Positions 5,813-52,132 of a stretch of DNA of 64,000 nt are shown here, in pieces. Positions within the stretch are counted from its first letter, which is position 1, and every line of letters starts with the position of its first letter. The notes under the pieces were generated by a model. That model had not been told where the DNA came from, did no database searches, and worked only from the letters and a program-made list of their open reading frames with translations. Position numbers and translations under genes: made by a program. Location: sequence record NC_048047.1; one strand, written 5' to 3'.

Positions 5813-5838
5813 GTGACGTCGATCGTGACACTTGTCAA
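5813..5838 (-). promoter_or_regulatory. Class II promoter: TTGACA, 2 bp, 18-bp box
   Basis: Box reads GTGACG-TCGATC-GTGACA on the plus strand (5813-5830). Confidence 0.7.
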
Positions 5839-5874
5839 CCACGGCGTCGTGTGTCTAGTTAGAGGGACGAGTAC

Positions 5875-6339
5875 ATGAGGAAGGTGATGGGGCGCTATAC
5901 CAGCTTGTTCGAGGAGGCCGCCCAGGTCGTGGACGCAACGTCTCAGTACCCAGGGCAGACCATCCCCGGACTATGGGAGACCTCAGACACGGCTTCCTGG
6001 TCAATCCTGATGGGCGTGATCATGAGCAACGCCCTGGCGGCCACCTGTCGCCGGCGGGACGATTGCGTCTTCGAACATGCACTGGAGCGCTTGATCCAGA
6101 TCACGGCCGGCGTGGAAGTCGAACTAAAGGGCGACCCAGCGCAGATCGCGTCGCGCAGGCTGCGGCTCGCGGCCAAGATCAACGCCGATCGCGTGGAGAA
6201 CGCTGTCGAGCGCCTAAGTCGACTGGCGGCCGAAGCTGCGGGCTATCTCGAAGGCGAGAATGATCCTCGTCTCAAGCAACTGGTCATCGAAATACGCGCC
6301 GCCATCGGCGACGCCAAGGAAGCAGGAAAGATCGAGTGA
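5875..6339 (+). CDS. Hypothetical protein
   Basis: First gene of the plus-strand block; helical. Confidence 0.7.
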   Translation: MRKVMGRYTSLFEEAAQVVDATSQYPGQTIPGLWETSDTASWSILMGVIMSNALAATCRRRDDCVFEHALERLIQITAGVEVELKGDPAQIASRRLRLAAKINADRVENAVERLSRLAAEAAGYLEGENDPRLKQLVIEIRAAIGDAKEAGKIE

Positions 6340-6890
6340 CGACGCCGACCAAACCCAAGATCAAAGGCTCCAAGCGACTGGCCCGCCGCGCGGCGGCCCG
6401 CGCGCTCTATGGCGCCAAGCCTCCCGCTGGCGGCTACAAAGTCAAGCCGTTGCCTCGGTTCTTCACCAAGCCCGCACTGCCCTCGGACAGGGTGACGCGC
6501 ATCGAGACGCTGACCGGCATCCTGGAGAAGGCGGCGAAGGTTCAGCAAGGCCAACCGCCCTTCTATCAGAATCTGTATTGGACCGACCGCTCGGGTGCGA
6601 CCCAACGGCTGGTCGAGATGCCGATGATGCACCTGAAGTCGGCGATCCATCTTGTCCGGGTCAATCGCATCGACGCCATGAAGGCGGCGGCCAAGATCAA
6701 GGGGCAGGCCGAACGCAGCGCGCTCAACGCCCGTGCGGCCCTGGCCTGCGCTTGGCTGGTCTGCATGGAGGCCGAAGCCGAGCGGCGCGATCCTACCTAC
6801 GCCAGCCTGCGTAAGCTGCAAGGACACACCAAGGCCACGCCGTCTCCGGTCGAGATCGCGGCCTTGCCCGGCACCTTCATCGGGCAGTAG
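6336..6890 (+). CDS. Hypothetical basic protein
   Basis: GTGA coupling, GC3 bias. Confidence 0.7.
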   Translation: MTTPTKPKIKGSKRLARRAAARALYGAKPPAGGYKVKPLPRFFTKPALPSDRVTRIETLTGILEKAAKVQQGQPPFYQNLYWTDRSGATQRLVEMPMMHLKSAIHLVRVNRIDAMKAAAKIKGQAERSALNARAALACAWLVCMEAEAERRDPTYASLRKLQGHTKATPSPVEIAALPGTFIGQ

Positions 6891-6894
6891 CGGC

Positions 6895-7962
6895 ATGGGT
6901 TACTACGCCACGCGCTATCGTCTCCCCGACGGCACGATCCAGATCACTCAGTGCTACGCCGAGTCCGAGGAACACCTGGGTGAGGTGATGGCGGCGCGTG
7001 GCATGGGTGAGGCCCACCACCCGACGGGCTACGTCATCGCCAAGCCGAAGATGCCGTCTGAGTGGCTGGAAAAGCGCGACTACGCCAAGGCCATCCATGC
7101 CTTGACCTGGGCGGCGATGATCGCCGTCAAGGCGGGCGTGGACGCCTGGACCCTGCTCCACGACAAGGGTCTGATGCACGAGTTGGCGCACCTCAACGAA
7201 TACAACACCGAGGTCACCGCCTATCGACCGATGGATGCATGGTTGAACGCCTTCGGTCACCAAAGTGGGCAAGGCGCTGAGCCGCTCGATCTCAGAGCGC
7301 GCCGGCTGAAGCTGGTGGCCAGCCTCAAGGCGTTCGAGGCCACAGTACCGGGCTTGGCGCCGCCGCCGCCCAAGATCACGACCGTCGACTACAATGAACT
7401 CGAAAAGCGCGTCCTGGCGCAGGCCTACGATCTCCTGATCGAAGATTCCACCATTGAGTTCAAGACCGCGCCCAAGAAGGGCGAGAAGATCGTGGTGTCC
7501 TACGACTACGCCGCTGAAGAAGCCTTCCGATTGCCCGTCCGCATGCGCGTTGGGTCACGCGACTTCGATAAGCAGCGCCTGGAGCAATCCAGGACCGCCA
7601 AGGCCCAGAAGACCCAACAACTCCTGGCGAAGATGAAGGCGACCTCGGAAAAGTTGAAGGCCGCTCAGGCGCCGCCCTCGGAGGTAAGGGAGTCTGCGTT
7701 CAGTTCGATCTTGCGCGAGTATGCCGATAAAGTCCTGGGCAGCCCCCTGAGCAAGGACGCTGTCATCCCCAACGTCTTTTTGCCGGGAAGGACTTTCCGA
7801 GCCTCGAAGGTCGAGCCGGAAATGCAGAATTACGATCCCCAGGAACAGAAGTTCAAATACGAATACATCTTCGAGGTAAATCGCAAGAACCTAGATCAGC
7901 AAATCCTCGAAACTCTGACGCGCAAGGAAGACTTGGCGTTCAAGCTCGGAAGTCCCCTGTGA
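6895..7962 (+). CDS. HExxH family protein 1 (with long C-terminal extension)
   Basis: ATG 6895; LLHDKGLMHELAH; paralogous to 9719 and 36804. Confidence 0.75.
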   Translation: MGYYATRYRLPDGTIQITQCYAESEEHLGEVMAARGMGEAHHPTGYVIAKPKMPSEWLEKRDYAKAIHALTWAAMIAVKAGVDAWTLLHDKGLMHELAHLNEYNTEVTAYRPMDAWLNAFGHQSGQGAEPLDLRARRLKLVASLKAFEATVPGLAPPPPKITTVDYNELEKRVLAQAYDLLIEDSTIEFKTAPKKGEKIVVSYDYAAEEAFRLPVRMRVGSRDFDKQRLEQSRTAKAQKTQQLLAKMKATSEKLKAAQAPPSEVRESAFSSILREYADKVLGSPLSKDAVIPNVFLPGRTFRASKVEPEMQNYDPQEQKFKYEYIFEVNRKNLDQQILETLTRKEDLAFKLGSPL

Positions 7963-8462
7963 TGATTACGCCAGCCCGTCTGCCCGAACTGGACGACCGC
8001 TGCGCCTGCTACGGCCAGTGGCTCGATGAAGACATGTGGGTCACCGGAACGATCGTTGCCATCAGCGGCAGCGGCGCCACCGTCAAGACTGACCAGGGCA
8101 AGGAACTGAAGGTTCCGCACCGCCGGTTGACCTGGAAGAAGGCGCGCTCGGAATGGGCAGTCTGGTCGCCGCAGGTCGATCAGGAGGTCGAGAAGATTCG
8201 CACCCAGCGCGGCGGGGACGGTCGCTCGAAGTACAATCGTAAGCTGGTACCGGGCGAATACGTCCGTTGCCAGATGGGCACCAAGTTCGTCGGTGGTTTT
8301 GTCTGCCGGGTTCTTCTCGAAGGCTACATGATCACCATCCCCAAGGAAAAGTCCTTGGTACCCGACGCCGGCGTCGGTAACTTTGTGATCTCGGCCGACA
8401 TGCTTTCCTACGACCCCGACCGCCTGTGCTGGCAAGCCCGCTACACGCGGGTCAAACCGTGA
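7959..8462 (+). CDS. Hypothetical protein (beta-rich)
   Basis: GTGA coupling, GC3 bias. Confidence 0.7.
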   Translation: MMITPARLPELDDRCACYGQWLDEDMWVTGTIVAISGSGATVKTDQGKELKVPHRRLTWKKARSEWAVWSPQVDQEVEKIRTQRGGDGRSKYNRKLVPGEYVRCQMGTKFVGGFVCRVLLEGYMITIPKEKSLVPDAGVGNFVISADMLSYDPDRLCWQARYTRVKP

Positions 8463-8638
8463 CGAAGGATGATGCGATCAAGGTCGCCGAGGCCGTGAAC
8501 GCCATCGGGGATGTGGGCTTCTATCGAACCGAGACCCTGGCGCGTCTGCGCCGGTCTTTTCCCGAGGTCGCCGACGTCCTCGTCATCGACTATCCATCCA
8601 GCCGCCAGGAAAGGGAGGCTCGCTGTGCATCTGCCTGA
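8459..8638 (+). CDS. Small hypothetical protein
   Basis: GTG 8459 overlaps the upstream stop. Confidence 0.6.
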   Translation: MTKDDAIKVAEAVNAIGDVGFYRTETLARLRRSFPEVADVLVIDYPSSRQEREARCASA

Positions 8639-9212
8639 CGACGCCATCCGCTGGAAGATCAAGGCGCCGCGCCTACTGCCGCTGATCCCCCGTCCCTGGC
8701 TCCAGGAAGCGGCTGAGACCATCCGAGCCGAATGGACAAATCTGCGGCGCGGTCATCACGAGCCGTCGATCACCTCCTACCAACCCTTCGTGCGTGACGT
8801 GCCGCAGCACCAGAAGCTCAATCCTGGTCTGTCCTTCATCTATACCAATGGCGTGGCCCAGTATCACACCGACGGCAACTATCCGCGCTTCTTCTACCTG
8901 CTGATCCTTCATTCGCGGTCCTACTGCGTCGATGGTGGAGCATGGCCCGAGCCGTTCACCGCCGATCGTCCAGGCGACTTGATCTGCCTGGATAGTCACC
9001 TGGAGCACGGGCTGCGCGCCAAGTGGCTGGAGGGACCCGAAGACCTTGACCCTGAGGAGATGAACGTCAACCGCTGTCTGCCGAGCTACTGGCTGGCGCT
9101 GTCGATGGATTCCTGGGCGCTCTTGACACCAGAGCAGACGATCATGGCCTATAGCCGCGCTTTGGAGCACAACAACAAGAATATGCCGGCGCAAGCCCTG
9201 GAGATCGCATGA
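8625..9212 (+). CDS. Putative 2OG-Fe(II) dioxygenase / cupin-fold protein
   Basis: GTG 8625 after GGAGG; HTD ... GDLICLDSHLEH gives an HxD...H facial-triad pattern. Confidence 0.55.
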   Translation: MHLPDDAIRWKIKAPRLLPLIPRPWLQEAAETIRAEWTNLRRGHHEPSITSYQPFVRDVPQHQKLNPGLSFIYTNGVAQYHTDGNYPRFFYLLILHSRSYCVDGGAWPEPFTADRPGDLICLDSHLEHGLRAKWLEGPEDLDPEEMNVNRCLPSYWLALSMDSWALLTPEQTIMAYSRALEHNNKNMPAQALEIA

Positions 9213-9709
9213 AGACCCACTTCCATCGTATCCAGCCGTCCACGGTCCAGGACGCCATCGAGCTTCTGCACTCGTGGATGGACGAAAACGACAAGCTGGG
9301 CTTCATCATGGAAGGCCAGTCCGGTCGCCTGCACCATGGGTTCATGCGCGTCGTGCGTAACGAATGGAACCTCTGGGACACCTCCACGCCAATCGTGCGC
9401 AACACCAAGGCCGTCTATGGCGTCAACCACGCCGACGACATCTCGGGCCTGATCGAAGGCGGTCTGCTGGCCAAGCTGAACGGCGAGGATTTCAACTTCG
9501 ACGCCGAAGCCCGCCGCTACAAGGACCACTGGGCGCGCGAGGCGGCCAGCAAAGTCAAGGCCGTGCCGATCGAACCCTACACCCTCGCTTCCAGCCTCAC
9601 GGGAAGGGCCGACCACCTCGCGCCCAACCCGACTACCCGCCCTGGCACCTTGGAGGCTCCGCGTAAGCGGGGAATCCTCGATCGCCTGTTCTCCCACTTC
9701 AATCAATAG
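9209..9709 (+). CDS. DUF6794-like hypothetical protein
   Basis: H.GF.R.VRNEWNLW ... GVNHADDISGLI motif recognised by eye. Confidence 0.5.
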   Translation: MKTHFHRIQPSTVQDAIELLHSWMDENDKLGFIMEGQSGRLHHGFMRVVRNEWNLWDTSTPIVRNTKAVYGVNHADDISGLIEGGLLAKLNGEDFNFDAEARRYKDHWAREAASKVKAVPIEPYTLASSLTGRADHLAPNPTTRPGTLEAPRKRGILDRLFSHFNQ

Positions 9710-9718
9710 GAGCCCCGC

Positions 9719-10219
9719 GTGGCCAAGACCGACCCCAACCTGCCCTTCCTCTTCCATACCTCCTACGGCGAAGGCGCGCGCCGCCACGGCACCGTGATCG
9801 AGGCCGACAGCATCGAGCATGCTCGCGCCCTGGCCGTCCAGCGCGGCCTCAACGAGACCATCGACAGCCTGGGCTATCAAGGCGGCGATCCGGGCCTGGG
9901 CCATTTTGGCGCCTACCTGCTGAACGAGCGGTACGTCGATGCTCTGCACGAAGCCACTTTCCTGGGCTTCATCGCCATGCAATCGGGCGCGGCCACCGCC
10001 CGTGAAATCCTGGGCGACCGGGGCCTGCTGCACGAGATCGTCCACCTCATGCAGATGGGCAACGATCTCGACGATGAGCATCCCGACAGCCGCCTGATCC
10101 GCATCCGCGAACGGGCCAAGGACATCGCCATGCGCGTCCCCGGCTGGCCCAACGCCCACATCAACCACTTCTACCGCAACGCCGGCTTCGTGCCGAAGAA
10201 GGAAGTGGTCGAAGCCTGA
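9719..10219 (+). CDS. HExxH family protein 2
   Basis: GTG after GGAG; ILGDRGLLHEIVH. Confidence 0.75.
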   Translation: MAKTDPNLPFLFHTSYGEGARRHGTVIEADSIEHARALAVQRGLNETIDSLGYQGGDPGLGHFGAYLLNERYVDALHEATFLGFIAMQSGAATAREILGDRGLLHEIVHLMQMGNDLDDEHPDSRLIRIRERAKDIAMRVPGWPNAHINHFYRNAGFVPKKEVVEA

Positions 10220-10410
10220 TGACCGAGGTCCGACAGGAGGCGTTTGTCCACGCCTCCACCGACCAACGCTGCGTCCGCCTGGACAACGTCCATGGCGGAT
10301 GGGCGGCGCGCAACGCCGCCGGCGTGGAGAAGCAGTTCCCCACCTACGAGGCCGCCTGCCGATATGCGGGACTGCCGCCGCGCGTCCGAGAGCCAGTTCA
10401 TGATCAGTGA
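10219..10410 (+). CDS. Small hypothetical protein
   Basis: TGATG coupling. Confidence 0.65.
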   Translation: MTEVRQEAFVHASTDQRCVRLDNVHGGWAARNAAGVEKQFPTYEAACRYAGLPPRVREPVHDQ

Positions 10411-10657
10411 CGACCTCGATCTCGTGGACCCCGAGGTCGAGGCCCTGGCCCGCGCCATCACCGAGGAGGACTACCGCTACGGCGGCGGCGTGATCCTGCA
10501 CAATGAGCCTGACCTGGACAAGGTCGATGCCCACGTGGCCGCCAAGGTCGAATCACGCTGGCCCGAGCGCATCGAGCAGGCTCAGTCTCTGCTGGCGACC
10601 TTGCATCGATACAACCACACGGTGATACGCCTTCAGGGGCGTCTCGACCTGGGCTAA
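10400..10657 (+). CDS. Hypothetical protein
   Basis: ATG 10400 (MISDDLDLVDPEV...). Confidence 0.65.
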   Translation: MISDDLDLVDPEVEALARAITEEDYRYGGGVILHNEPDLDKVDAHVAAKVESRWPERIEQAQSLLATLHRYNHTVIRLQGRLDLG

Positions 10658-10721
10658 AAGGCGCGACCGGGGAGCGGCGGCGTAGCCGGCGTGAAACGGG
10701 ATGCGTTCGTGCTCTAATTCG

Positions 10722-10747
10722 TTGACACCGTGACGCGACTCGTGGCA
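10722..10747 (+). promoter_or_regulatory. Class II promoter: TTGACA-CC-GTGACG-CGACTC-GTGGCA
   Basis: Box 2 bp after the -35. Confidence 0.7.
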
Positions 10748-10757
10748 CGAACAGTGC

Positions 10758-11669
10758 ATGCAGCAGATCACCGACAGCGCTCCCCATCTTCGAGGCTACG
10801 GCTGGGCGCCGGGCGGCTACATGTCGACGTGTCACTCCTGCGAGCAGACCTTCATCGGCGACAAGCGCGCCATCTCCTGCCATCCGTGCGCCACCCGCCG
10901 CTACGAGAAAGAGCATCCCGAGACCATGACCGACGATCGCCGCCGCGTGCGCCAATCCTTCGCCGTCTACCTGGACCAGGATGGCGTGGTGTTCGACTTC
11001 GATGAGGGCCTGCGTCGGCTCGGGTTCCAACCCGACCCCGAGTACAACAAATCGTCGCACGCGATGAACGACGAAGCCAACCTGTGGAAGCAGGGCATGT
11101 ACGAGGTGATCAAGGGCACCGACTTCTTCGCCCGTCTCCCGCTCATGGACGGAGCCGTTGATCTCTACGCGGCTGTCGAGGACGCCGACCCGATCTTCCT
11201 GACGGCGTCGCCGAAGTTCGGCTCGACCGAGCATGATTTCCTGACCCATCCCTTCTTCCTGGGCGCGGCCTACCACAAGCGCCGATCGGTCGAAGAGGTG
11301 CTCCTGCCCCAGGTCGCCAAGCTGCGTATTCAGCAGTTGACGGGCAAGGAGCCCAAGGCCGCCGTACCGCGCGTGCGGATCGCTGACGATCGCTTCATCT
11401 GCACGACGTCCGCGCGCAAGCAGGAGTATATGCACCGGAAGCACTCGCCGCATCAGGTCCTGATCGACGACCGCATCGCCAACTGCGAGGCATGGGCGGC
11501 GGCTGGTGGCATCGCCATCCTGCATACCTCGGCCCGTAGCTCGATCACGATCTTCGAGCGGCTCGTCGATAGGGTGCTGGCCGGCGAGACCTTGGAGGCA
11601 GGCGTGCTGCGGACGGACTTTCCGCGTAGCAAGCAGCCCAAGGTCGATCTGGCGCAGGTCCTGGGCTGA
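10758..11669 (+). CDS. HAD-family 5'(3')-deoxyribonucleotidase-like protein with N-terminal Zn ribbon
   Basis: YLDQDGVV (motif I), FLTA (II), LIDD (IV); N-terminal CHSC...GDKRA..CHPC. Confidence 0.75.
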   Translation: MQQITDSAPHLRGYGWAPGGYMSTCHSCEQTFIGDKRAISCHPCATRRYEKEHPETMTDDRRRVRQSFAVYLDQDGVVFDFDEGLRRLGFQPDPEYNKSSHAMNDEANLWKQGMYEVIKGTDFFARLPLMDGAVDLYAAVEDADPIFLTASPKFGSTEHDFLTHPFFLGAAYHKRRSVEEVLLPQVAKLRIQQLTGKEPKAAVPRVRIADDRFICTTSARKQEYMHRKHSPHQVLIDDRIANCEAWAAAGGIAILHTSARSSITIFERLVDRVLAGETLEAGVLRTDFPRSKQPKVDLAQVLG

Positions 11670-11953: not shown

Positions 11954-11962
11954 GAGGAAGCG

Positions 11963-12546: not shown

Positions 12547-12811
12547 AGTTCTAAACCGCCGAGACTTCGGTGGTAAAATACCCCGTGGCGCTAAGTCTAT
12601 CGACAGGAACACGCCATACGGGAACCCATTTCACATCTCGCCTAAGATGACTCGGCCACAGGCCATAGCAGCTTTCAGTGTCTGGCTCCCGACACAACCA
12701 GCATTGATCGCCCGCGCGCGCCGCGAACTCTATGGCTACAATCTTGCCTGCTGGTGTGATCCCTTGCCTTGTCATGGGCACATCTGGAGGAAAATTCTCA
12801 TTACACCGTGA
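12518..12811 (+). CDS. DUF4326-family protein (start uncertain)
   Basis: IDR.TPYGNPF ... LYGYNLACWCDPLPCHG signature; many A/T-ending codons. Confidence 0.7.
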   Translation: MSTHGSWVCEVLNRRDFGGKIPRGAKSIDRNTPYGNPFHISPKMTRPQAIAAFSVWLPTQPALIARARRELYGYNLACWCDPLPCHGHIWRKILITP

Positions 12812-12825
12812 CGCCATCCTTGACA
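12800..12825 (+). promoter_or_regulatory. Class II box GTGACG-CCATCC-TTGACA upstream of the alarmone hydrolase
   Basis: Box 12808-12825; contains a TTGACA; preceded by ATTACA-CC. Confidence 0.6.
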
Positions 12826-12855
12826 GGGTAAGCGAAACCTAGGACACAATGTCAC

Positions 12856-15147: not shown

Positions 15148-15171
15148 AGCTTACAAGTTTGGGTGGTGTAA

Positions 15172-17084: not shown

Positions 17085-17936
17085 ATGACGACGTTCGAAA
17101 TCGTTGATCGCGAGCACACGTCCGGCTCCCAGGGTGGCACGGACTACGGGTCCAAGGCCTTGACGGTCCTGGCGCGCTCGCCCAAGGCCGTTCTGCTGTG
17201 GATGCCGGGTCACTCCTACTTCGGCGGGATCGGGATGCGCAATTACGCTTCTGCCTACATGCTACTGGTCAAGGAGCGGCGTCTGGGCGGCTGGAAGACT
17301 GGAGACAAGGAAGACTTCCGGCACAACCAGGACGCACCCGCGACGCGGCTGTCGCCGGCTTTGGTCATGGAACGCGCTGAGCGAATCAATCAGTTCTTCG
17401 AGGCCGATGTCGCCACGCAGATCGCCCAGGCGGTCAAGACGCGCCAGACGCTGTTGATCGATGGCGGCGGCGAGGCGCTGCGCAAGGATTACAACACCGA
17501 GCGCAAGAAGGCCCAGGCGCATGTGCAGAAGATTGCCGCCCAGGCCAGCGTGGCGCGTTCGATCGAACCGGAAGGCGTGGCCTGCTGTCGCCAGTGCGGC
17601 GTGAAGCTTACGCCCAGTCGCCATAAGCATTGGGTCGAGGACGGTGATGTGCAGCCCACCTCGCTCGAAGACCTCCAGCGCCGCTTCAACGATCTACGCG
17701 TCCTGGCGGTTGGACCGCACAACACCGTCGACAAGGCCCATCTGATCGGAACCTATACGACGTGGGATGGCGTGTCCTACGACAATGGTCCGTATTTCTG
17801 CACCGAGGGCTGCGCGGAGAACTATGCCGTCCGCGCCGTCGAAGCGTATGCGCCGCTCCCGATCATCCCCCAGCCCACGGCGGAGGAACTGGCGGCCCAG
17901 GAACGCGCCAAGCGGGACGCTGTCTGGGGTCTGTGA
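17085..17936 (+). CDS. Hypothetical protein with C-terminal Zn-finger-like domain
   Basis: CCRQC ... WDGVSY ... FCTEGCA; GGAG RBS. Confidence 0.75.
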   Translation: MTTFEIVDREHTSGSQGGTDYGSKALTVLARSPKAVLLWMPGHSYFGGIGMRNYASAYMLLVKERRLGGWKTGDKEDFRHNQDAPATRLSPALVMERAERINQFFEADVATQIAQAVKTRQTLLIDGGGEALRKDYNTERKKAQAHVQKIAAQASVARSIEPEGVACCRQCGVKLTPSRHKHWVEDGDVQPTSLEDLQRRFNDLRVLAVGPHNTVDKAHLIGTYTTWDGVSYDNGPYFCTEGCAENYAVRAVEAYAPLPIIPQPTAEELAAQERAKRDAVWGL

Positions 17937-17950
17937 GAAACCTGTTGACT
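17933..17950 (+). promoter_or_regulatory. Class I promoter (GTGAGAAACCTGTTGACT)
   Basis: Repeat motif, N16, CCTATGT; weak class II box at 17971-17988. Confidence 0.7.
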
Positions 17951-17999
17951 TGACGTGGCTGCTTGCCCTATGTCACGTTCAGCATCACAGGAGACCCGC

Positions 18000-22482: not shown

Positions 22483-22902
22483 ATGCGCAAAGCCCTGACC
22501 AAGGCCGTGACGATCGCCGGCCGTCGCTTCAACCTGATCGACATCTTCGTCAAGCGGGTGGACCTGTCGATGCTGCACGATCGTCCAACGGTCGACACGG
22601 CTGTCGGCGTACGCATCCTGGGCCTGGGCTTCAACATCCAGGCCTATCAGAGCACGCGATCCTTCACCCTGGCCCTGGGCCATTCCTGGTTGCTGGATGT
22701 TCAAATCGGCGGGACGGCGCCAGCCGTCTCGTCGCCGCTGAACACGGGGGCTCCCGATTTCAACCCGCCGGGCGTTCGGTTCTGCATGACCATCCTGGGC
22801 TCGATCACCAAGACGCGCTGGACCTGGGAGGGCTTCGAGGTCACCAATGTCCTCTACCCCGGACATGGCCGCGTGATGCGTTGGAGCCACCAGTTTGGCT
22901 GA
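22483..22902 (+). CDS. Hypothetical protein
   Basis: GGAG RBS. Confidence 0.7.
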   Translation: MRKALTKAVTIAGRRFNLIDIFVKRVDLSMLHDRPTVDTAVGVRILGLGFNIQAYQSTRSFTLALGHSWLLDVQIGGTAPAVSSPLNTGAPDFNPPGVRFCMTILGSITKTRWTWEGFEVTNVLYPGHGRVMRWSHQFG

Positions 22903-24100
22903 TCTAGACCTCTACAACGAACTATGGATTCGGACGGAACGTGAAGAGTCGTTCCGGTACATGAACGACGCTGTTCGACGCGCCCGCGCCTTTACGCTCG
23001 ATGACGACATGGCAAGCGTGCTGAGTCGATTGGCAGCATCCGCCGACGATCGGATGCTTCTGCGTTATAAGCAGGCAGCGCGGCTTCCCTATCCTGAAAT
23101 GTGGTTGGAAGCCAGCTACGAGCACGCCTTCGCGGACAACGCAGCGTCACGGCACGTATTTGGCCGCCCAACGAGGGTTGGATGGCTAATTCGTCAAGGA
23201 GACGTGAGGTATGGACCTGACGTGATCCAAGCTGTTCGGATTGCAAAAACCGATGGAGGCGGGCCTTTGTCTGGCGGCGATCAACTCGCGTCAGTCTATC
23301 CTATCAGAATGATTTGGCGCCCGGAAGGGAAGATCGAGTATCTTAATCACTCCAACTACGATGCTCACGAAGGCCCCGTTGGTCGCTATCTCCGAGAGAT
23401 TTGTGACGCTGAAAGAGACTTCAACTCCAAATCGGCTTCCATGCGTCTTTGCTGGACGCCCAACGATCCAGGCGTCGAGCGTGTCCAAGGACTGGATGCG
23501 CAGGCGCTGCTCGAACGCGCCAGCCGTGAGACGGATAAGCTGCCTTTGGCTGGCCACGCAGTCTTGACGACGGAGAATCGTACGTTATCCGGCTTATTGG
23601 AGCGTGTTGGCGCACGGAGTGTGGGTGAAGGCATCAACGAGATCATGGGCGCCGCGCTCTATGATCAAACCGGTGATCTGGGCCTGATCGTCACGGCCCT
23701 GTCCCTGATCAACGAAATTCCCGTCCGTTTCGTCGAGCACCAGCCGCGCGGGTCACTACGGGCCGGCGGTCGGATGCGCCCCTACATGCGCTCCTCCATC
23801 GTCTCGATCGAAGTCCCTGCCACCCGTCGCCGGATCAAGGACATCGAGAAGACGATCAAGCAGAAGGTCGAGGCCGCCAAACGCGCCCGCCACGAGGTGC
23901 GCGGCCATTGGATGACCGCTGACAAGCCGCCGCGCGTCGAGCAGACCCGCGAGACCAAGCGCTGGGAGACCTACTTCGATCGCGAAGGCCGTATCCGCTG
24001 GCGGACCTGGGTCGACAACCACATGCGCGGCAGCGCCGAGGTTGGCTACGTCCAGCAGGTCTATGAGGTGACCGAGAACCCGCGCCGTTCGAACTACTAG
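22895..24100 (+). CDS. Conserved hypothetical protein with C-terminal H.VRGHW motif
   Basis: 401 aa; RHEVRGHW...WV.NHMRG. Confidence 0.75.
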   Translation: MADLDLYNELWIRTEREESFRYMNDAVRRARAFTLDDDMASVLSRLAASADDRMLLRYKQAARLPYPEMWLEASYEHAFADNAASRHVFGRPTRVGWLIRQGDVRYGPDVIQAVRIAKTDGGGPLSGGDQLASVYPIRMIWRPEGKIEYLNHSNYDAHEGPVGRYLREICDAERDFNSKSASMRLCWTPNDPGVERVQGLDAQALLERASRETDKLPLAGHAVLTTENRTLSGLLERVGARSVGEGINEIMGAALYDQTGDLGLIVTALSLINEIPVRFVEHQPRGSLRAGGRMRPYMRSSIVSIEVPATRRRIKDIEKTIKQKVEAAKRARHEVRGHWMTADKPPRVEQTRETKRWETYFDREGRIRWRTWVDNHMRGSAEVGYVQQVYEVTENPRRSNY

Positions 24101-37406: not shown

Positions 37407-37408
37407 GG

Positions 37409-41104: not shown

Positions 41105-41149
41105 TTGCACCGTGTCACGAAGCATGTACTGATGACGCGACAAGTGACA
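41105..41149 (+). promoter_or_regulatory. Class II promoter with two boxes
   Basis: TTGCAC-CG-TGTCAC... then ATGACG-CGACAA-GTGACA (41132-41149). Confidence 0.65.
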
Positions 41150-41945: not shown

Positions 41946-41946
41946 C

Positions 41947-42640: not shown

Positions 42641-42656
42641 TCCTGGAGACGCCATC

Positions 42657-43403: not shown

Positions 43404-43406
43404 TCC

Positions 43407-44667: not shown

Positions 44668-44676
44668 GAGACACCC

Positions 44677-44865: not shown

Positions 44866-44867
44866 CG

Positions 44868-45266: not shown

Positions 45267-45270
45267 CCGC

Positions 45271-45996: not shown

Positions 45997-46430
45997 ACTG
46001 TGAATTCGACGGGCATGGTGGCCCTCTGATCTCCCTGGCCCTGTACCGCAAGGACGGCCGCCACCTCTATCTGGTGCGCGACGACGCTGAATTCATGATT
46101 CAGGACCTGTGGGTGCGCCAGAACGTCTTTCCCATCCTGCGAAGCGTTCCGTCCAACATCGGCATCGATGTCGTACCCATCGGAGAGTTCGGCCAGAAGA
46201 TCGCCGAGTTCTTCCAGGACGAGACCCCCTACATCGTCTGTGATTGGCCCATGGACGCCAGCCTGTTCTCCCAGACCCTGATGATCCGGCCCGATCGCAT
46301 GGCGACACTGCCCAACTACGTGGTCCAGGTTTTCCGCATCGACGCCTACGAGGGCACGCCATTCAAGAACGCCGTTCGGCACAACGCCGCCTGGGATGCC
46401 ATCGTCCTCTGCGACGCCATCGAACCGTGA
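45981..46430 (+). CDS. DEDDh 3'-5' exonuclease, Rv2179c/RNase AS-like
   Basis: YYLDCEF, LISLAL, WV..NV.P.L, DW..D, HNA.WDA. Confidence 0.75.
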   Translation: MRYYLDCEFDGHGGPLISLALYRKDGRHLYLVRDDAEFMIQDLWVRQNVFPILRSVPSNIGIDVVPIGEFGQKIAEFFQDETPYIVCDWPMDASLFSQTLMIRPDRMATLPNYVVQVFRIDAYEGTPFKNAVRHNAAWDAIVLCDAIEP

Positions 46431-46446
46431 TCCCCAGAAAGGTCAC

Positions 46447-46472
46447 GTGACACCTTGACGCGATCGGTGTCA
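46447..46472 (+). promoter_or_regulatory. Class II promoter: GTGACA-CC-TTGACG-CGATCG-GTGTCA
   Basis: Box 2 bp after a -35-like hexamer. Confidence 0.6.
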
Positions 46473-46511
46473 TGGAGGATGAAAGGTTAAGCAAGAAACC
46501 GAGGTTCTCCC

Positions 46512-46844
46512 GTGACCGCCGCGCCCATTTGGGACTACTACCCGACGCCTCCAGGCTCCCTTGAACGCATGCGATACCACGTCGACTCGGCCGGCTCGCA
46601 TCTGCACTTCGAGATTCACGATGCCGACGGCTCCGACGACGCGCCGCTGATCGACGGAGCCGCGCGCATCTTTGGCACGGTCAACTGGGAAGGGTGCATC
46701 AACTGGCGCACCCACAAGTACATGAACTGCCACTTCTGCACGCCGGCCGATTCGCTGCGTCTGCATGAACTGTTCAAGGGCCTGTGGCGCCTTGCCAGCC
46801 TGTCCTTGCCCAACTGGTGTGGAGACGTGGAGGAAACGGCGTGA
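46512..46844 (+). CDS. Hypothetical protein
   Basis: GTG after GAGG. Confidence 0.7.
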   Translation: MTAAPIWDYYPTPPGSLERMRYHVDSAGSHLHFEIHDADGSDDAPLIDGAARIFGTVNWEGCINWRTHKYMNCHFCTPADSLRLHELFKGLWRLASLSLPNWCGDVEETA

Positions 46845-47395
46845 ACCAGGGCGATATCGACTTCACCCAGGCGTGGTGGAGCAACAAGCTGGGTGATCCG
46901 CCGGCCTTGCTGCGCTTCCTGGAGAAGCTGCACTACACCGAGTTCAGCGGCTACAAGGACAACATCGACGCCGCCTACAAGTGGGCGCCGAACAATCCAA
47001 CGGCCCATCACATCTTCTGCCAGACGGCGGAAGACGAGATGCGCCATGCCCAGCTTCTCGTTCCCCTGGTCCTCGATCGTGGCGGACGCTGCGATGGTAT
47101 CGATGCGCCTGCGCAGTCCTTCTACTGGGACGAGATGGACAAGGCGATCATCGACCTGGAATCCTGCGCCGCCGTCTTCCACCTCGGGGAAAAGCTCGCC
47201 GCCGAGCGCTTCGAGGTGATGCTGGACAATTATGGCAATCCCGAAGACATCCGGGCCTTCCTGGAATCGGTCATTCCCGATGAGCAGCACCATGCGCGCA
47301 TCTTCGGCAAGCTGGCTGGCCCCGAAGCGATCGCCGCGATGCAGGCCCACCACGACAAGACCGTCATCCAGTTGAAGGACGCAGGCGGAAGCTGA
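46841..47395 (+). CDS. Ferritin-like di-iron carboxylate protein
   Basis: GTG 46841 after GGAGG; E...DEMRH...E...DEQHH. Confidence 0.75.
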   Translation: MNQGDIDFTQAWWSNKLGDPPALLRFLEKLHYTEFSGYKDNIDAAYKWAPNNPTAHHIFCQTAEDEMRHAQLLVPLVLDRGGRCDGIDAPAQSFYWDEMDKAIIDLESCAAVFHLGEKLAAERFEVMLDNYGNPEDIRAFLESVIPDEQHHARIFGKLAGPEAIAAMQAHHDKTVIQLKDAGGS

Positions 47396-47811
47396 TGAAC
47401 ACCTACATGAACACCTACATGATGCCGACCGGCGCGTACGAGGCGCTGGACTATCCGCGCCGCGCGTCGTCTAGCTGGTCGCGGGACCTGCCGGACTGGA
47501 CCTTCATCACGATCTCGCCGGGAGATGTGCCACCCGAGGGCGCCGTGCCGATCAGCTTCATCCACGCGGCGGTCGAGCAGGCCTACAACGCCTACCACCT
47601 CAATGGCTGGATCAACTGGGAAGGCGGTGAGATGCCTCTGCCTCAGGGCACCCTGGTCGATGTCAAGCACCGCGACGGTACGACCTACACCGAGCAGTTC
47701 GCCGGCTCGATCGAAGGCGCCGCCGCCGAGTGGTTCCACGGCGATGAGCAGAACGGAGCGACGAGTCCGGCCGACATCATCGCCTATCGCCGGACGCCCC
47801 GGCGTGGATGA
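47395..47811 (+). CDS. Hypothetical phage protein
   Basis: W..W.GG..P....V.V..RDG...W.H...DIIAYR motif. Confidence 0.7.
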   Translation: MNTYMNTYMMPTGAYEALDYPRRASSSWSRDLPDWTFITISPGDVPPEGAVPISFIHAAVEQAYNAYHLNGWINWEGGEMPLPQGTLVDVKHRDGTTYTEQFAGSIEGAAAEWFHGDEQNGATSPADIIAYRRTPRRG

Positions 47812-48049
47812 TGCCAAGACGGTCCAGACCGTCCTGGAGGTGGCGAGGCGCTTGGCGGCCCAGGGCATGGAGCCCTGGCCGTCGATCGCACCAAAGCTGA
47901 CCGGCGCCTACGAGGAACCGCAATTCGTCTTCACGGTCGGCAAGGCTGAACTTCGGATCGACGAAGCCATCCATCTGGTGCATCCGCCGACTGAAGCCAA
48001 TGTCGTGATCCTGTGTGAGATCGAGAAAGTCCATCGCGCTCGTGGCTAG
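47804..48049 (+). CDS. Hypothetical protein
   Basis: GTG 47804. Confidence 0.6.
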   Translation: MDDAKTVQTVLEVARRLAAQGMEPWPSIAPKLTGAYEEPQFVFTVGKAELRIDEAIHLVHPPTEANVVILCEIEKVHRARG

Positions 48050-48290
48050 CCGTACCTGCATCAATCCAAACTGCGGCCGTCGGTTCAAGCCCGATCATCG
48101 AGGGCACTTCTGGTGTCAGCAGATGTGCCGTCAGAGCCACTTCAAGATCGACACTGGCAAGGACCTGTCAGGCGCCTTTGGCTTCATGACGGACCGCAAT
48201 CTCGTGCGGGCCTTCGACGACAAGTGGATCAAGGCCGCCGGCCGACGCACGAAGCCCACGAAGAAGAAGGCTCAGCCATGTCCATCATGA
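48042..48290 (+). CDS. Small Zn-ribbon-like protein
   Basis: CINPNC...F...CQQMC. Confidence 0.65.
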   Translation: MASRTCINPNCGRRFKPDHRGHFWCQQMCRQSHFKIDTGKDLSGAFGFMTDRNLVRAFDDKWIKAAGRRTKPTKKKAQPCPS

Positions 48291-48487
48291 CCGTCACCTC
48301 GCCCGTCTCGTTCCGCTACTTCATGCAGAAGTCCAAGGATTGGCTGGCGTCCCACATCCAGACCCTGGAAGGGCTTCTGGACCGCCCCAGGACGCCGCAC
48401 AGCGCCCTGATGACGCTTCTCCGCTACGACCTAGCCAAGATGGCTCTCGCCCTCCACAGCGAGCTTCCTGAGGACGACAATGTCTGA
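48278..48487 (+). CDS. Small hypothetical protein
   Basis: ATG 48278. Confidence 0.6.
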   Translation: MSIMTVTSPVSFRYFMQKSKDWLASHIQTLEGLLDRPRTPHSALMTLLRYDLAKMALALHSELPEDDNV

Positions 48488-49250
48488 CCTCTCCGACGCC
48501 TTCGTAGAGCGCTATGGCGCCGACCTCTTCGACGACTTGTGTGAAGGCGTCCTGTCACCTGAGGCCTATCCGCACGTGCGGGTCACCGAAACCGAAAGGC
48601 ACAATGCCTGCAACCACACCTATCGTGGCGAGATCGTCCGCGAGGGCCAGGAGACGGTGTATTACTCCCTCGATAGTGGGGATTGGAACGGGACCTACCT
48701 GCGCTACTTCAGCGAGGAAGGCCCGGAGGACTACGAGCGCGGCTATCGCGTCTATGTCTTCGATCTCAATCCCAGTCGGCTGACCGTACCCGTCGCTGAG
48801 GTCCGTCTGAAGGTTTCGATCTGGCTCAACAACTACCTGTCGGTCACCATGGCCAACGGCGAGTTCAAGGACAAGGAGCGCGGCTACGGCTATGATTCCA
48901 CCTTCGCCCCCGGTGTCGTGACTGACAAGCACTATCGCGACTACGCCGCCTCCCGCGATCTGATCCCCGCTTCCGCCTGGATACCCGAGACCATCGAGCG
49001 GGTGTCCACGACCGAATTCAACAACGCCCGGATCGAATACGAGAAGGCGGCCGACATCCGCTACCGCAAGCAATTCCGCGACAAGGTCGAGCCGCAGCAC
49101 GAAGAGGCCTTGAGCCAACGTGCCGGCGAGTTCTTCCGGCTCCTGGCGATCCGGTTCGCCAGCGAGGGGCGCGAGAACGCCGCCGCTCTGGCCAAGGACG
49201 TTTCTAAGGCTTGGCTGGATGCTCTGGTCGATTCACCAAGTTCTGCTTGA
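48480..49250 (+). CDS. Hypothetical protein
   Basis: 256 aa; GAGG RBS. Confidence 0.75.
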   Translation: MSDLSDAFVERYGADLFDDLCEGVLSPEAYPHVRVTETERHNACNHTYRGEIVREGQETVYYSLDSGDWNGTYLRYFSEEGPEDYERGYRVYVFDLNPSRLTVPVAEVRLKVSIWLNNYLSVTMANGEFKDKERGYGYDSTFAPGVVTDKHYRDYAASRDLIPASAWIPETIERVSTTEFNNARIEYEKAADIRYRKQFRDKVEPQHEEALSQRAGEFFRLLAIRFASEGRENAAALAKDVSKAWLDALVDSPSSA

Positions 49251-49272
49251 ACTCTGTCACGAATGGCGTCAT
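49247..49272 (+). promoter_or_regulatory. Class II promoter: TTGAAC-TC-TGTCAC-GAATGG-CGTCAT
   Basis: Box in reverse orientation 2 bp after the -35; CATGAT at 17-bp spacing. Confidence 0.65.
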
Positions 49273-49561
49273 GATGCCGCAAATGCTGACCCAGAAGGGG
49301 CCGATGCCCGTGAACACTAACCCGGATAGACGCTCGTTCCTGGCCCTCCTGGGCCTGGGCGTCGGGGGCTTCAGCGCCGGCTTGGGCGGCGGGCTCCTGG
49401 CCATCAAGCCGCCCGAGCCCAAGGTGATCGTGGCCAACTTGCCCGCTATCGACACCAGCAACGCCGGAAAGTATCTGGTCTACGACGGCGAGAAGATGGC
49501 CTGGATCAAGGTCAATCCCCAGGCCCGTAGAATCCTCCAGGAAATTGAGAGTCACCTGTGA
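49271..49561 (+). CDS. Small protein with twin-arginine-like signal
   Basis: DRRSFLALLG followed by a hydrophobic Gly-rich stretch. Confidence 0.6.
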   Translation: MMPQMLTQKGPMPVNTNPDRRSFLALLGLGVGGFSAGLGGGLLAIKPPEPKVIVANLPAIDTSNAGKYLVYDGEKMAWIKVNPQARRILQEIESHL

Positions 49562-49965
49562 ACGCCTCCGACCTCGTTCCGCTACGCGACGGCGACCTCT
49601 TGACCCTCAAGGGCGTGTTCCGTCTCCAGGACGGTCAGCCCCATGTCGACTTCCGCTGCGCTGGCGCCGCGTGGCTGCCGCTCCTCGAAGGGGTGATGCA
49701 GCAGGTCGTCAGCATCGACCATCTGCTGCACAAGGGTGACTACGTCTCGGCCTCCGGGCAGTACGGGCACGTTCGTCAGGCGCTGATGGCCAACGGCGAG
49801 ATCGCCGAGCCGGGTCAGCGCCCCGATGCCTACTTGGTCGACATCGAGCGCGACTCCTACGGGTCGTTCGGCGACAAGGCCAAACCCAGCGGCCTGACCC
49901 TGGTTGAGGCCGGCAAGGTTCATCTTCGTAAGCGTACCGCTTCAGGCCGACAAGGATTGACATGA
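49558..49965 (+). CDS. Hypothetical protein
   Basis: GTGA coupling. Confidence 0.7.
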   Translation: MNASDLVPLRDGDLLTLKGVFRLQDGQPHVDFRCAGAAWLPLLEGVMQQVVSIDHLLHKGDYVSASGQYGHVRQALMANGEIAEPGQRPDAYLVDIERDSYGSFGDKAKPSGLTLVEAGKVHLRKRTASGRQGLT

Positions 49966-50387
49966 CCACCAGCACCCAGACCGTTCGCCCCGGCTCCGTC
50001 ACCGAAATCTACCTGATGCGGGCGGGCTTCCTGAAGCTGGCGGTCTACGGCATCGAGCCGGCCAGCGAGCACGAGCCGATCGAGTATCAGGCCCACTATA
50101 TCGTTGGCGATACCGTCGGCGCCGTTCTTCCGCTCCCGCTGCTGCGGATGCTCAAGGCCAATCGCGATTACATCGCCACCATGGTCCAGGGCCTTGCCGA
50201 GTACGATGGGTTGGTCGATGAGGTCGACGGCGCCGGCCTCCTGGTGCAACGCTACCAGGACGCCAACGGCAAGACCCAGATCAGGACCATCCTGTCCTGG
50301 CAGGGCATGACGATCGGCGTCCTGGGTGGCGGCATCGGCGAGATCGACCTGATCCTGAGCGCTCTCGAACATATCCCGACCACTTGA
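49962..50387 (+). CDS. Hypothetical protein
   Basis: ATGA coupling. Confidence 0.7.
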   Translation: MTTSTQTVRPGSVTEIYLMRAGFLKLAVYGIEPASEHEPIEYQAHYIVGDTVGAVLPLPLLRMLKANRDYIATMVQGLAEYDGLVDEVDGAGLLVQRYQDANGKTQIRTILSWQGMTIGVLGGGIGEIDLILSALEHIPTT

Positions 50388-50403
50388 GCCAAGGAGACAC
50401 CCG

Positions 50404-50859
50404 ATGGCCAACGACCAGAACCGCGATTTCACCTGCTGCTACCTGCTGATGCGTGTCGACCTTAAGTCGCTGTGCGCCGGCAAGGCGATCGCCCAGGCCC
50501 ACCACGCCGGGCTTCAGTTGGAGCATGACGCCAAGGACTGGACCTCCGAGCAGCAGGCGATCTTCGCCCGCTATCGCAAGGAGGCCCGTGGCTTCGGGAC
50601 GACCATGACCCTGGCTGTCACCGAGCAGGAGATGCGCGCGGCGATGATTCGCGCTCGCGACCTGGGCTACCTGCATGGCGTGGTCCACGATCCTTCCTAT
50701 CCGCTCTATGATGGCGGGTTCCTGCACCACATCCCGCTGGACACCTGCGCCTACGTCTTCGGCGAGAAGCGCTTCGTCGAGAACGCGGTGATAGGCCTGG
50801 ACCTCCTGCGTCGCGCCAGTCTCTGGCAGCCGGTGTCCAAAGTGCCGGCCGATGGCTGA
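50404..50859 (+). CDS. Divergent Pth2-like (peptidyl-tRNA hydrolase type 2 fold) protein
   Basis: LLMRVDL....GKAIAQAHHA, TMTLAV, VHDP, TCAYVFG, LDLL. Confidence 0.65.
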   Translation: MANDQNRDFTCCYLLMRVDLKSLCAGKAIAQAHHAGLQLEHDAKDWTSEQQAIFARYRKEARGFGTTMTLAVTEQEMRAAMIRARDLGYLHGVVHDPSYPLYDGGFLHHIPLDTCAYVFGEKRFVENAVIGLDLLRRASLWQPVSKVPADG

Positions 50860-51154
50860 TCTGCTACAAACCTGGGATCGCCTCGACGCGGCCATCCAGC
50901 GAGTCCTGACCTCGACGATCGAGGACGTCAGTCCGCGCGCCCAGGTGCTCGATACCATGCGCGAGGAAATGCGTGACGTGCTTCAGCAGCGCGCCCGGCA
51001 TCAGGACCTCATCGTCAAGGCGCTCGAAGCCTATGACGACGTCTTGAAGGCGGGCAGCCAAGAAGCTGCCGACGTGCCCGGCGCCCAGGCCTTCATCGCG
51101 CACAACGACCACATCCGCCTGAAAATCGCCGAGGCGATCGAGCTTCACCTATGA
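50852..51154 (+). CDS. Hypothetical helical protein
   Basis: Coupled. Confidence 0.7.
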   Translation: MADLLQTWDRLDAAIQRVLTSTIEDVSPRAQVLDTMREEMRDVLQQRARHQDLIVKALEAYDDVLKAGSQEAADVPGAQAFIAHNDHIRLKIAEAIELHL

Positions 51155-51582
51155 CCCCGCGTGAGCACAACTACGCCCAACTCCGCATGGCGCTCAGCCG
51201 TGACTTCAAGGGCCATGCCGAGATCAGGAAGCTGATCAAGGGCCAGAAGCTGCGCGACGACCTGGACGCGGCCGAAGACCTCGCCGGCGTCAAGGCCGTG
51301 GTCCACGAACTGATCACCAGCGTCTATGGCGACCATCCCTGGCTCCGTGAACCGCCCCCGGTCTACGAGGGCGAGATCAAGAAGGGCATGGAGTTCTTGA
51401 TGACGGTCGACGAGGGCAATGCCCGAGAGATCAAGATCGTCGAGGTCCAGGAAGACAATCTAGGACACCGTTTCTACAATTATCGCTACATGAATGGCGT
51501 CGGTAAAGGCCACATCGAGTCTCTGGCCGACGACATGCTGCGCGGGATCATCGAACCGCTCGACGACGAAATCCCCTTCTAG
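51151..51582 (+). CDS. Hypothetical protein
   Basis: ATGA coupling; ends DDEIPF. Confidence 0.7.
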   Translation: MTPREHNYAQLRMALSRDFKGHAEIRKLIKGQKLRDDLDAAEDLAGVKAVVHELITSVYGDHPWLREPPPVYEGEIKKGMEFLMTVDEGNAREIKIVEVQEDNLGHRFYNYRYMNGVGKGHIESLADDMLRGIIEPLDDEIPF

Positions 51583-51597
51583 CCAAGAGACCCGAAC

Positions 51598-51870
51598 ATG
51601 GCTTTTATCCGCCTCTCCGTGGACGACATCCTGCATCACTTCGATCTGACCAAGGCTTCTCCTGGCAACATCCGCGTCAGTGATGGCGCGGGCATCACCA
51701 TTGGAATGGGTGAAGAAGCTTTCGATCTGGAGATCGATGTCGAGCACCCCGACTTGCCCGAAGGCCGGGTCGAGGTTCACGCCGACTTCAAATACCACGA
51801 CGACGGCGGCATTACGCTGCTGCGCATCAATGATGTCGACCTCCAAGATGTCGCTGGCGAGGACGACTAA
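51598..51870 (+). CDS. Acidic hypothetical protein
   Basis: Co-directional ORF. Confidence 0.7.
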   Translation: MAFIRLSVDDILHHFDLTKASPGNIRVSDGAGITIGMGEEAFDLEIDVEHPDLPEGRVEVHADFKYHDDGGITLLRINDVDLQDVAGEDD

Positions 51871-51872
51871 TC

Positions 51873-52118
51873 ATGAGCATCATGCCTGACACGCGCCAAG
51901 GCGCACACATCGAAGTGCCGGCCAATGCGCCGCATGAGCTTTCCCGCGCCCTGGCGGCCCTGCTGAAGGTGCATCCCGAGATGGGCGTCTACCGGGGACA
52001 CTTCTCGTCCCTGTGGGAGCGCAACTACACCATGACGGCCGAAGGCGGTGCCTATCTGGCCCGCCTGATCCTGAAGGACCTGGAAGAACGCGGCGCGACG
52101 GACCTCTTGACGTCGTGA
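51873..52118 (+). CDS. Hypothetical protein
   Basis: Stop codon lies within the class II box. Confidence 0.7.
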   Translation: MSIMPDTRQGAHIEVPANAPHELSRALAALLKVHPEMGVYRGHFSSLWERNYTMTAEGGAYLARLILKDLEERGATDLLTS

Positions 52119-52132
52119 CGTCGATCGTGTCA
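52107..52132 (+). promoter_or_regulatory. Class II promoter: TTGACG-TC-GTGACG-TCGATC-GTGTCA
   Basis: Box matches the 5813 box at 17 of 18 positions. Confidence 0.7.

Follow-up and report, generated by a model that had tools for sequence, protein, structure and literature searches.

Several described systems place a sequence-specific element at or near the -35 hexamer of a promoter. A single protein, lambda CI (at OR2/PRM-PR) or phi29 p4, activates when bound at or upstream of the -35 and represses when bound over the core promoter. Direct-repeat sites at the -35 are known for lambda CII (TTGC-N6-TTGC), for OmpR/PhoB-type regulators and for alphaproteobacterial LexA (GTTC-N7-GTTC). T4 middle promoters combine a MotA box near the -35 region with sigma appropriation by AsiA, while the host sigma and the -10 are retained. 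Here we analyze an 18-bp box, RTGACG-N6-GTGWCA, in a 64,000-nucleotide (nt) stretch of the Caulobacter phage CcrBL9 (NC_048047.1, 322 kb, a jumbo phage of the genus Bertelyvirus); this stretch, 100% identical to record positions 186001-250000, is referred to below as the window. The box consists of two TGWC-core hexamers whose starts lie exactly 12 bp apart, and it is a real, selected, promoter-specific element; it is, moreover, a genome-wide promoter signature of the structural and replication genes, with about 45 sites, of which the window holds a part. In the papers that we consulted we found no described promoter classes for jumbo Caulobacter phages.

Comparison with these systems brings out both the familiar and the unusual features of the box. 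The factor that we propose below would resemble lambda CI and phi29 p4 in its dual register, switching gene classes in the course of infection; their operators, however, are dyad-symmetric, whereas most CcrBL9 boxes are direct repeats of 12-bp period, and CcrBL9 is handled as a lytic phage. With the CII, OmpR, PhoB and LexA sites the box shares tandem repeats roughly one helical turn apart, the proximal repeat lying at the -35, but it differs in its period (12 rather than 10-11 bp), in its half-site, TGWC(R), and in having inverted versions at the same spacing. None of the dual-register or direct-repeat systems is a sequence or spacing match for the box. The T4 middle class is similar in that a phage-specific element near the -35 marks non-early genes; the MotA box, though, replaces the -35, whereas the CcrBL9 box keeps a perfect TTGACA, and the annotation of the CcrBL9 record includes no homologue of MotA or AsiA. 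On the side of the host, PMC1175088, citing Keiler and Shapiro (2001), describes a conserved Caulobacter motif, 'RRF', that sets timing from within the -35/-10 spacer of DNA-replication promoters silenced in swarmer cells; the position of this host element is analogous to that of the boxes that lie downstream of a -35 (type B/C, below).

The statistical support for the box is strong. In the window the pattern RTGACG-N6-GTGWCA has 4 exact matches (0.02 expected) and 9 matches at up to one mismatch (1.05 expected), and neither count was reached in any of 100 shuffles. The exact copies are at 5813 (+), 41132 (+), 49255 (-) and 52115 (+), and one mismatch is found at 10730 (GTGGCA), 12808 (TTGACA) and 46455 (TTGACG); a further intergenic copy at 17971 (-) was absent from the list in the initial annotation, and a match at 3175, within a coding sequence (CDS), is probably due to chance. 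That annotation had placed boxes at promoters, in either orientation, and on these points it holds up well: a box is found at every coordinate it listed, the one at 41113 that it called partial being weak (11.9 bits by the site matrix; 3 mismatches when read as inverted); 8 of the 9 matches fall in the 8.1% of the window that is annotated as non-coding; and both forward and inverted copies occur.

Genome-wide scans covered CcrBL9 positions 1-300000, the rest being terminal repeat, with second-order Markov sequences as the control for the matrix. Outside the window the coding mask came from a crude gene caller whose stop codons agree with the annotation in 92 of 131 cases, so that its labels are approximate; the sites cited here from outside the window were checked by eye against the annotation. 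The original pattern has 41 matches genome-wide at up to one mismatch. The spacing is exact: among direct pairs of TGACR in non-coding DNA, 21 lie at exactly 12 bp, while no other spacing in the range of 5 to 39 bp has more than 7 (median 1); smaller peaks are seen for inverted pairs at 12 bp, and also at 8, 19-20 and 31-32 bp. Direct pairs at 12 bp outnumber convergent ones 21 to 5, and inverted versions of the box at this same spacing are found at 93925, at 52115 and in the copy of 46455 in the related phage RB23. The aligned sites give the consensus cGTGACGC-n-a-w-TC-KTGACA-yGg, and the matrix built from them has 55 matches at 15 bits or more in the genome versus 1.9 in the Markov controls. 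By a manual tally of matrix matches against the annotation, about 31 of 40 strong boxes run in the direction of the local genes; the others are mostly second members of inverted pairs or have the inverted (type C) layout. The box did not stand out in a maximal-order Markov k-mer test of the whole genome; it emerged from the contrast between non-coding and coding DNA and from the spacing test; an E. coli-type promoter and terminator scan found no promoter at any box, but it also missed obvious promoters of the A-rich class I described below; and a scan of IMG/VR with GTGACG-N4-TCTTGACA gave, among the matches listed, mostly single matches in unrelated contigs. One box, at 253418-253435 (-), faces two minus-strand tRNA-Arg genes at 253145-253295, and the element may also drive tRNA transcription.

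Selection on the box is evident from the alignment of seven box regions of CcrBL9 with those of CcrSC (about 87% identical) and RB23 (about 70% identical there). Between CcrBL9 and RB23 the hexamer positions are identical in 80 of 84 cases (12 positions in each of 7 regions, 95%), while the central N6 is identical in 27 of 42 (64%) and the flanking non-coding DNA in 310 of 490 (63%); for hexamers versus flanks, Fisher p = 1e-10. This pattern, with the hexamers kept and the N6 and the flanks drifting, is that of a two-part recognition site.

The box stands in two registers relative to the -35. In type A, the commonest form outside the window (GTGACGC-nn-TTC-TTGACA) and represented within it by 12808, the 3' hexamer is itself a perfect -35. 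Of the 22 sites whose 3' hexamer is TTGACN, 12 have a TA beginning 15-18 bp downstream (about 3 expected from the flanks), most often at 17 bp (6 sites), an excess such as a sigma-70-type -10 would give. Type A sites precede genes near those for the major head protein, tail, tail fibre, DNA methyltransferases and ribonucleotide reductase, among others, and are also found in the region after the DNA polymerase gene. In type B/C, the box follows a separate -35-like hexamer (at most one mismatch to TTGACA) at a distance of 1-2 bp; 10 of the 42 strong sites have this layout, and none has such a hexamer ending 0 or 3-12 bp before the box. The box is forward at 10730, 52115 and 46455 and at genome positions 126807, 180811, 46571 and 103337, and inverted at 49255, at 41113, at 5813 relative to gp422, and at genome 140376; we also count the window sites 41132 and 17971 with type B/C. 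Both forms occur together at 126787 and 103318, where the hexamers start at 0, 12, 20 and 32.

The layout of -35, 2 bp and box, which the initial annotation had taken to be fixed in seven promoters, is thus a genuine arrangement, but a minority one. It is borne out at 10722, 52107, 49247, 41105 and, on the minus strand, 5838-5833, but not at 12800 (ATTACA) or 46447 (GTGACA), two hexamers that are not kept in CcrSC and/or RB23 although the boxes are. The accompanying idea of an operator that covers the spacer and the -10 survives in part: about five window sites have the corresponding layout, but at 12808 and at most sites in the genome the 3' hexamer of the box is the -35. The box lies between the -35 and the +1 at 10730, 52115, 41132, 49255 and 17971, and at 5813 relative to gp422; this is not so at 12808 or at most sites genome-wide. 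A perfect or one-off -35 hexamer is present at 10722, 12820, 52107, 49247 and 5838-5833, and the -10s of the window box sites are poor (GCACGA, GACACA, CATGAT).

The genome is partitioned between the box and a second type of promoter, class I, which has the form aAGAAAnnTGTTGACA, 17 bp and a TAnAAC-like element, followed by a strong Shine-Dalgarno sequence. The class I signature AGAAAnnTGTTGACA has 45 copies genome-wide, all of them in 0-40 kb and 160-300 kb, and the window holds 16 class I promoters between 591 and 63487 (e.g. 591-, 15799+, 28913+ and 61231+). Between these lies the block of 40-160 kb with the genes for structure, tail, lysis and replication, where no promoter type other than the box can be recognised; in the window's arm of the genome, boxes form scattered islands. 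The claim that the box is distinct from the A-rich class I promoters and marks a different class of genes is supported. In type A, the 5' hexamer of the box occupies the same position as the UP-like A tract of class I. As a separate observation, words of the TAACCTTAA/TTAAGGTTA type are over-represented, mostly in the terminal repeat (1-22 kb) and almost all in non-coding DNA (AACCTTA: 45 versus 8.5 expected); a relation to the clusters of CtrA-type sites reported for phiCbK-like phages (PMC9437464) is possible.

At several boxes the start codon lies at a set distance from the promoter. Counting from the first T of the -35, the ATG is at position 36-37 for 10722 (ATG at 10758), 12820 (12856) and 41125 (41161), and for genome positions 126799 (126835) and 154777 (154730), although the hexamer at 41125-41130, TGTACT, matches TTGACA at only 3 of 6 positions; the genes concerned are without a well-placed Shine-Dalgarno sequence. 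The ATG of the deoxyribonucleotidase gene, 10 nt past the box and at position 37 from the -35, also without a Shine-Dalgarno sequence, is the real start because the N-terminal codons are kept in RB23, and that of the HD_4 hydrolase gene lies 30 nt past the box in all three phages. Distances from box to ATG in CcrBL9 and RB23 are 10 and 9, 30 and 30, and 11 and 11 nt, despite the divergence of the sequences; together with the missing Shine-Dalgarno sequences, this conservation of distance fits initiation at or beside the ATG, and from these sequence features leaderless starts are predicted at 10758, 12856 and 41161. The Caulobacter host makes leaderless transcripts, one of which is mentioned in PMC4287350. 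A leaderless start was also considered for ATG 49283 (position 37 from TTGAAC) and rejected, CcrSC having ATA there.

A cognate of the box is present in phiCbK, a phage of the genus Shapirovirus with the same host, of which we examined the first 100 kb. The 18-bp unit (A)TGTCGTGAATC-TTGACA is found there at about 10 promoters and precedes the portal gene, the capsid operon, the major tail tube and endolysin genes and several replication genes; we found no published description of it. Like the CcrBL9 box it consists of a hexamer, 6 bp ending in TC and a TTGACA -35, in a phage of the same subfamily, but its 5' hexamer is ATGTCG, not GTGACG, its spacer holds a GANTC (CcrM) site that most CcrBL9 boxes lack, and there are no copies downstream of a separate -35 in the 100 kb. 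The 12-bp direct-repeat peak of TGACR is likewise absent from these 100 kb, with 1 pair at 12 bp, the background level. By analogy with phiCbK only, we infer that the box-bearing genes of CcrBL9 share timing.

Two side observations concern the same promoters. In many type A promoters TTAACCATG or CATGGTTAA lies 5-19 bp downstream of TTGACA (CcrBL9 36542, 58631, 123671, 129384, 132837 and 154760; phiCbK 19463, 47404, 94002 and 98010), and in several of those of phiCbK it starts 16 bp after the -35, i.e. at the position of the -10; in the window only 46485 (GGTTAA) resembles it. Both words contain TTAACCAT, an octamer which we take to be a CtrA/SciP-type half-site. In phiCbK, GTCGTGAATC-TTGACA always has GANTC directly upstream of the -35 (about 10 promoters, e.g. 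33210, 78364 and 94002). phiCbK encodes a GcrA homologue (PMC3556154), whereas CcrBL9 as annotated does not, and a link of the phiCbK element to methylation-dependent activation is possible.

The reading we prefer, to which we give slightly less than an even chance, is that a phage-encoded factor binds the hexamer pair, activates from the type A register, occludes from type B/C and so marks non-early genes. Binding to the hexamer pair, the phage origin of the binder and the sign of regulation at each register are what we infer from the observations above. One phage-encoded DNA-binding protein would read the pair on promoters of the host sigma-73 type. In type A it would sit at about -47 to -30 (GTGACG at about -47 to -42) and recruit or stabilise RNA polymerase at promoters that lack an UP-like tract; in type B/C it would sit at about -27 to -10 and block the polymerase. 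The box-bearing genes of the window would then be timed apart from the class I operons around them and together with, or switched by, the programme of the structural and replication genes, the box being part of the non-early transcription programme of Bertelyvirus phages. Two features guide us in this direction: two genera on the same host have the same -35 but different upstream hexamers, a difference that points to a phage-encoded rather than a host reader, and the occurrence of both orientations, of head-to-head and back-to-back pairs and of 0/12/20/32 arrays fits a transcription factor better than an element read by the polymerase only.

Candidate readers can be named. The product of gp491 (genome 147894-148517) has an HTH_3 domain and an S24/UmuD-like C-terminus; it is homologous to phiCbK gp109 (80860-81660; 29% identity, E = 5e-16), and the two are syntenic, both adjoining dUTPase and ribonucleotide reductase genes. 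A CI/LexA-like protein is thus conserved in two genera of phages regarded as lytic. As alphaproteobacterial LexA illustrates, a protein with a helix-turn-helix and an S24-type domain can read a direct repeat, and gp491 shares this architecture. Another candidate, gp426 (window 4121-4510, -), is assigned a winged helix from a structural match to PadR/MarR that is of low confidence; although downstream of the divergent region with the box, it has a class I promoter of its own. The remaining candidates, gp464 and gp475, are XRE-type proteins. In its most specific form our proposal would be that the CI/LexA-like protein (gp491, phiCbK gp109) reads the pair with its 12-bp period, co-evolves with it between genera, activates from -47/-30, represses from -27/-10 and times several dozen promoters, some of them leaderless, across Dolichocephalovirinae; taken as a whole, this is an unlikely conjunction.

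Several points weigh against a phage-encoded dual-register factor. The four proteins are candidate binders on architecture and synteny only; with a period of 12 bp the half-sites are rotated by about 50 degrees relative to each other, an unusual geometry for a dimer; at 46455 the register of the -35 can be read in more than one way; and the cognate element of phiCbK also precedes replication genes, which are reported to be early, so that an element found before both early and structural genes may not define a single timing class.

The most serious competitor, which we nevertheless hold to be unlikely, is an intrinsic extended promoter element read by the host RNA polymerase itself, through region 4 of sigma-73 and/or the alpha C-terminal domains and without any separate factor. 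Most sites have a perfect -35 as their 3' hexamer, with a -10-like TA at the right distance; box direction mostly follows the gene; the 5' hexamer stands in for the UP-like A tract of class I at the same position; and GTGACGC resembles the host -35 consensus, which Malakooti, Wang and Ely reportedly gave as TTGACGS in 1995. Boxes downstream of another -35 would on this account be overlapping alternative promoters. Yet UP elements are A/T-rich, about 9 strong sites face against the local genes, several inverted pairs serve no gene (46515, 129403, 142988, 140376, 49255), the box at 10730 in the type A register would start transcription inside conserved coding sequence, and phiCbK and CcrBL9 have different upstream hexamers while sharing the host polymerase. 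A variant in which the polymerase is modified by a phage cofactor such as a T5 A1-like protein draws support from the proposal of Gill et al. that an A1 homologue alters polymerase specificity (PMC3556154). It is rather less probable again that the box is an operator for a co-opted host Caulobacter regulator, coupling its genes to the cell-cycle or nutritional state of the host. Such co-option is documented for CtrA in phiCbK-like phages (PMC9437464), PMC1175088 gives the binder of the RRF motif at replication-gene promoters as unidentified, and the box genes include some of nucleotide and alarmone metabolism; however, phiCbK on the same host has another upstream hexamer and, in its first 100 kb, no 12-bp TGACR peak, and the box matches none of the host motifs that we checked (CtrA, RtrA/RtrB/CdxA/TgrL, the Pho box and GANTC).

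We regard as improbable the narrow interpretation with which this analysis began, a pure repressor operator or MerR-like site in the spacer and -10 that defines a regulon of about seven promoters. Five or six window sites do sit 1-2 bp past a -35-like hexamer, a non-random register, but 12808 and probably 46455 do not fit, and in most genome sites the box is upstream of and includes the -35. The family, moreover, numbers about 45 sites and not seven. A MerR-like activator does not agree with the promoters either: the spacer is about 17 bp rather than 19-20, start codons at position 36-37 from the -35 (10722, genome 126799) leaving room for a spacer of about 17 bp only, the repeats are mostly direct and do not form the dyad, and no MerR-family protein is annotated in the record, whose roughly 560 proteins were not all scanned. 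To chance, or to an artefact of composition in a GC-rich genome with many TTGACA-like promoters, we attach next to no probability: TGACA-type pentamers are generally enriched in the non-coding DNA of the phage, but the spacing peak is exact, the shuffle and Markov controls fall short, and the hexamers are 95% conserved against 63% for the flanks, so that this explanation is already refuted.

Specific known regulators were considered as binders and set aside. The Pho box consists of CTGTCAT direct repeats with an 11-bp period at the -35; for PhoB, there is 1 pair at 11 bp versus 21 at 12, and the orientation of the half-sites relative to the gene is opposite. The CtrA box TTAA-N7-TTAA has 0 matches in the window, and TTAACCAT half-sites accompany some boxes elsewhere in the genome as separate elements. 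For GcrA/CcrM, GANTC is present in only 1 of 8 window boxes (10730, at 10737). A compact promoter for a phage-specific polymerase that starts 10-11 nt downstream is disfavoured by the anti-oriented sites and by -10s that lie 17 bp past the 3' hexamer. XRE factors of the TgrL/RtrA type (RtrA, RtrB, CdxA, CdxB, TgrL) have chromatin immunoprecipitation sequencing (ChIP-seq) matrices that read CAA(C/G)C (S2 Table, PMC10688885).

The sites in the window are collected in the table that follows.

Table. Box sites and associated -35 hexamers in the CcrBL9 window (window coordinates).
Feature	Position	Strand	Context
Box, exact	5813-5830	+	Divergent region; gp422 to the left, gp421 to the right (probable start 5875)
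TTGACA -35 of gp422 promoter	5833-5838	-	Overlaps rightward TTGTCA (5832-5837); block kept in RB23
TTGACA -35 hexamer	10722-10727	+	2 bp upstream of box; kept in CcrSC and RB23
Box, 1 mismatch (GTGGCA)	10730-10747	+	Between -35 and start of deoxyribonucleotidase gene
Box, 3' hexamer TTGACA (12820-12825), type A form	12808-12825	+	Upstream of HD_4 hydrolase gene
Inverted box, 1 mismatch	17971-17988	-	Over -10/+1 of class I promoter; kept in RB23
TTGCAC -35-like (41105-41110), 2 bp, weak inverted box (41113-41130)	41105-41130	+	Partly kept in RB23
Box, exact	41132-41149	+	gp354 ATG 41161, 11 nt past box in all three phages
GTGACA (46447-46452), 2 bp, box (46455-46472, 1 mismatch)	46447-46472	+	Upstream of rubrerythrin/ferritin-like operon
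TTGAAC -35-like (49247-49252), 2 bp, inverted box (49255-49272, exact on minus)	49247-49272	+	Upstream of gp334
TTGACG (52107-52112), 2 bp, box (52115-52132, exact)	52107-52132	+	Upstream of gp326, ATG 52166

Genes in the window run leftward from 5732 and rightward from about 5875 on, and the box at 5813 lies between the two sets, 2 bp downstream of the -35 of the leftward promoter and ending 1 bp before the rightward TTGTCA, which is followed 18 bp on by a -10-like TAGTTA (5856-5861). Both hexamers of this box are kept in CcrSC, and a single base differs in RB23 (GTGACA to GTGACC). The gene assignments made earlier for three of the boxes are correct: a deoxyribonucleotidase gene follows 10730, a gene for an HD_4-domain hydrolase follows 12808, and the rubrerythrin/ferritin-like gene is the second after 46455, the first gene of that operon probably having its true start at GTG 46512. 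The RB23 copy of this last box is a palindrome, TGACG-N7-CGTCA, without the upstream hexamer. The class I promoter overlapped by the box at 17971 has its A-rich element and TTGACT at 17936-17950. The layout at 41105-41130 is the same as that at 49247-49272, which recurs at genome 140376 and, on the minus strand, at 5838-5813; the arrangement at 52107-52132 is kept in CcrSC, while RB23 is without the homologous region.

The sites also bear on the annotation of neighbouring genes. The RefSeq start of gp421 looks too short (gene at 5875-6339; the PHROG match begins at residue 8, and RB23 annotates 155 amino acids (aa)), and the start is probably 5875; that of gp342 (46512-46844) likewise looks too short, CcrSC and RB23 both annotating the long form, and is probably GTG 46512. 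The small gp335, annotated with 37 aa at 49204-49317 (-), runs antisense over the 49255 box and the gp334 promoter and is probably not a gene. Elsewhere, an apparent gap of 718 bp (22903-23620) is covered by an open reading frame (ORF) of 401 aa (22895-24100) that is annotated as a gene in CcrSC. A sigma-54 reading of TGGCAC-N5-GTGCA (10743-10759), which spans the box and the start codon, was rejected, as the second half is not kept in RB23 and the start site would lie inside the gene; the likeness to a -24/-12 element is probably a coincidence.

Jumbo Caulobacter phages carry hundreds of genes of unknown function, and the box, if validated, would together with the A-rich class I promoters sort the genes of CcrBL9 into temporal classes from sequence alone. 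It would flag the deoxyribonucleotidase, the HD-domain alarmone-type hydrolase and the rubrerythrin-like protein as wired unlike their early-type neighbours, and it would serve as a DNA bait for the regulator that switches transcription in this group of phages. The host is already known for leaderless mRNAs, and the leaderless starts predicted here can be tested in it directly. The box is not surprising in principle, but it is useful for annotating and dissecting this phage group.

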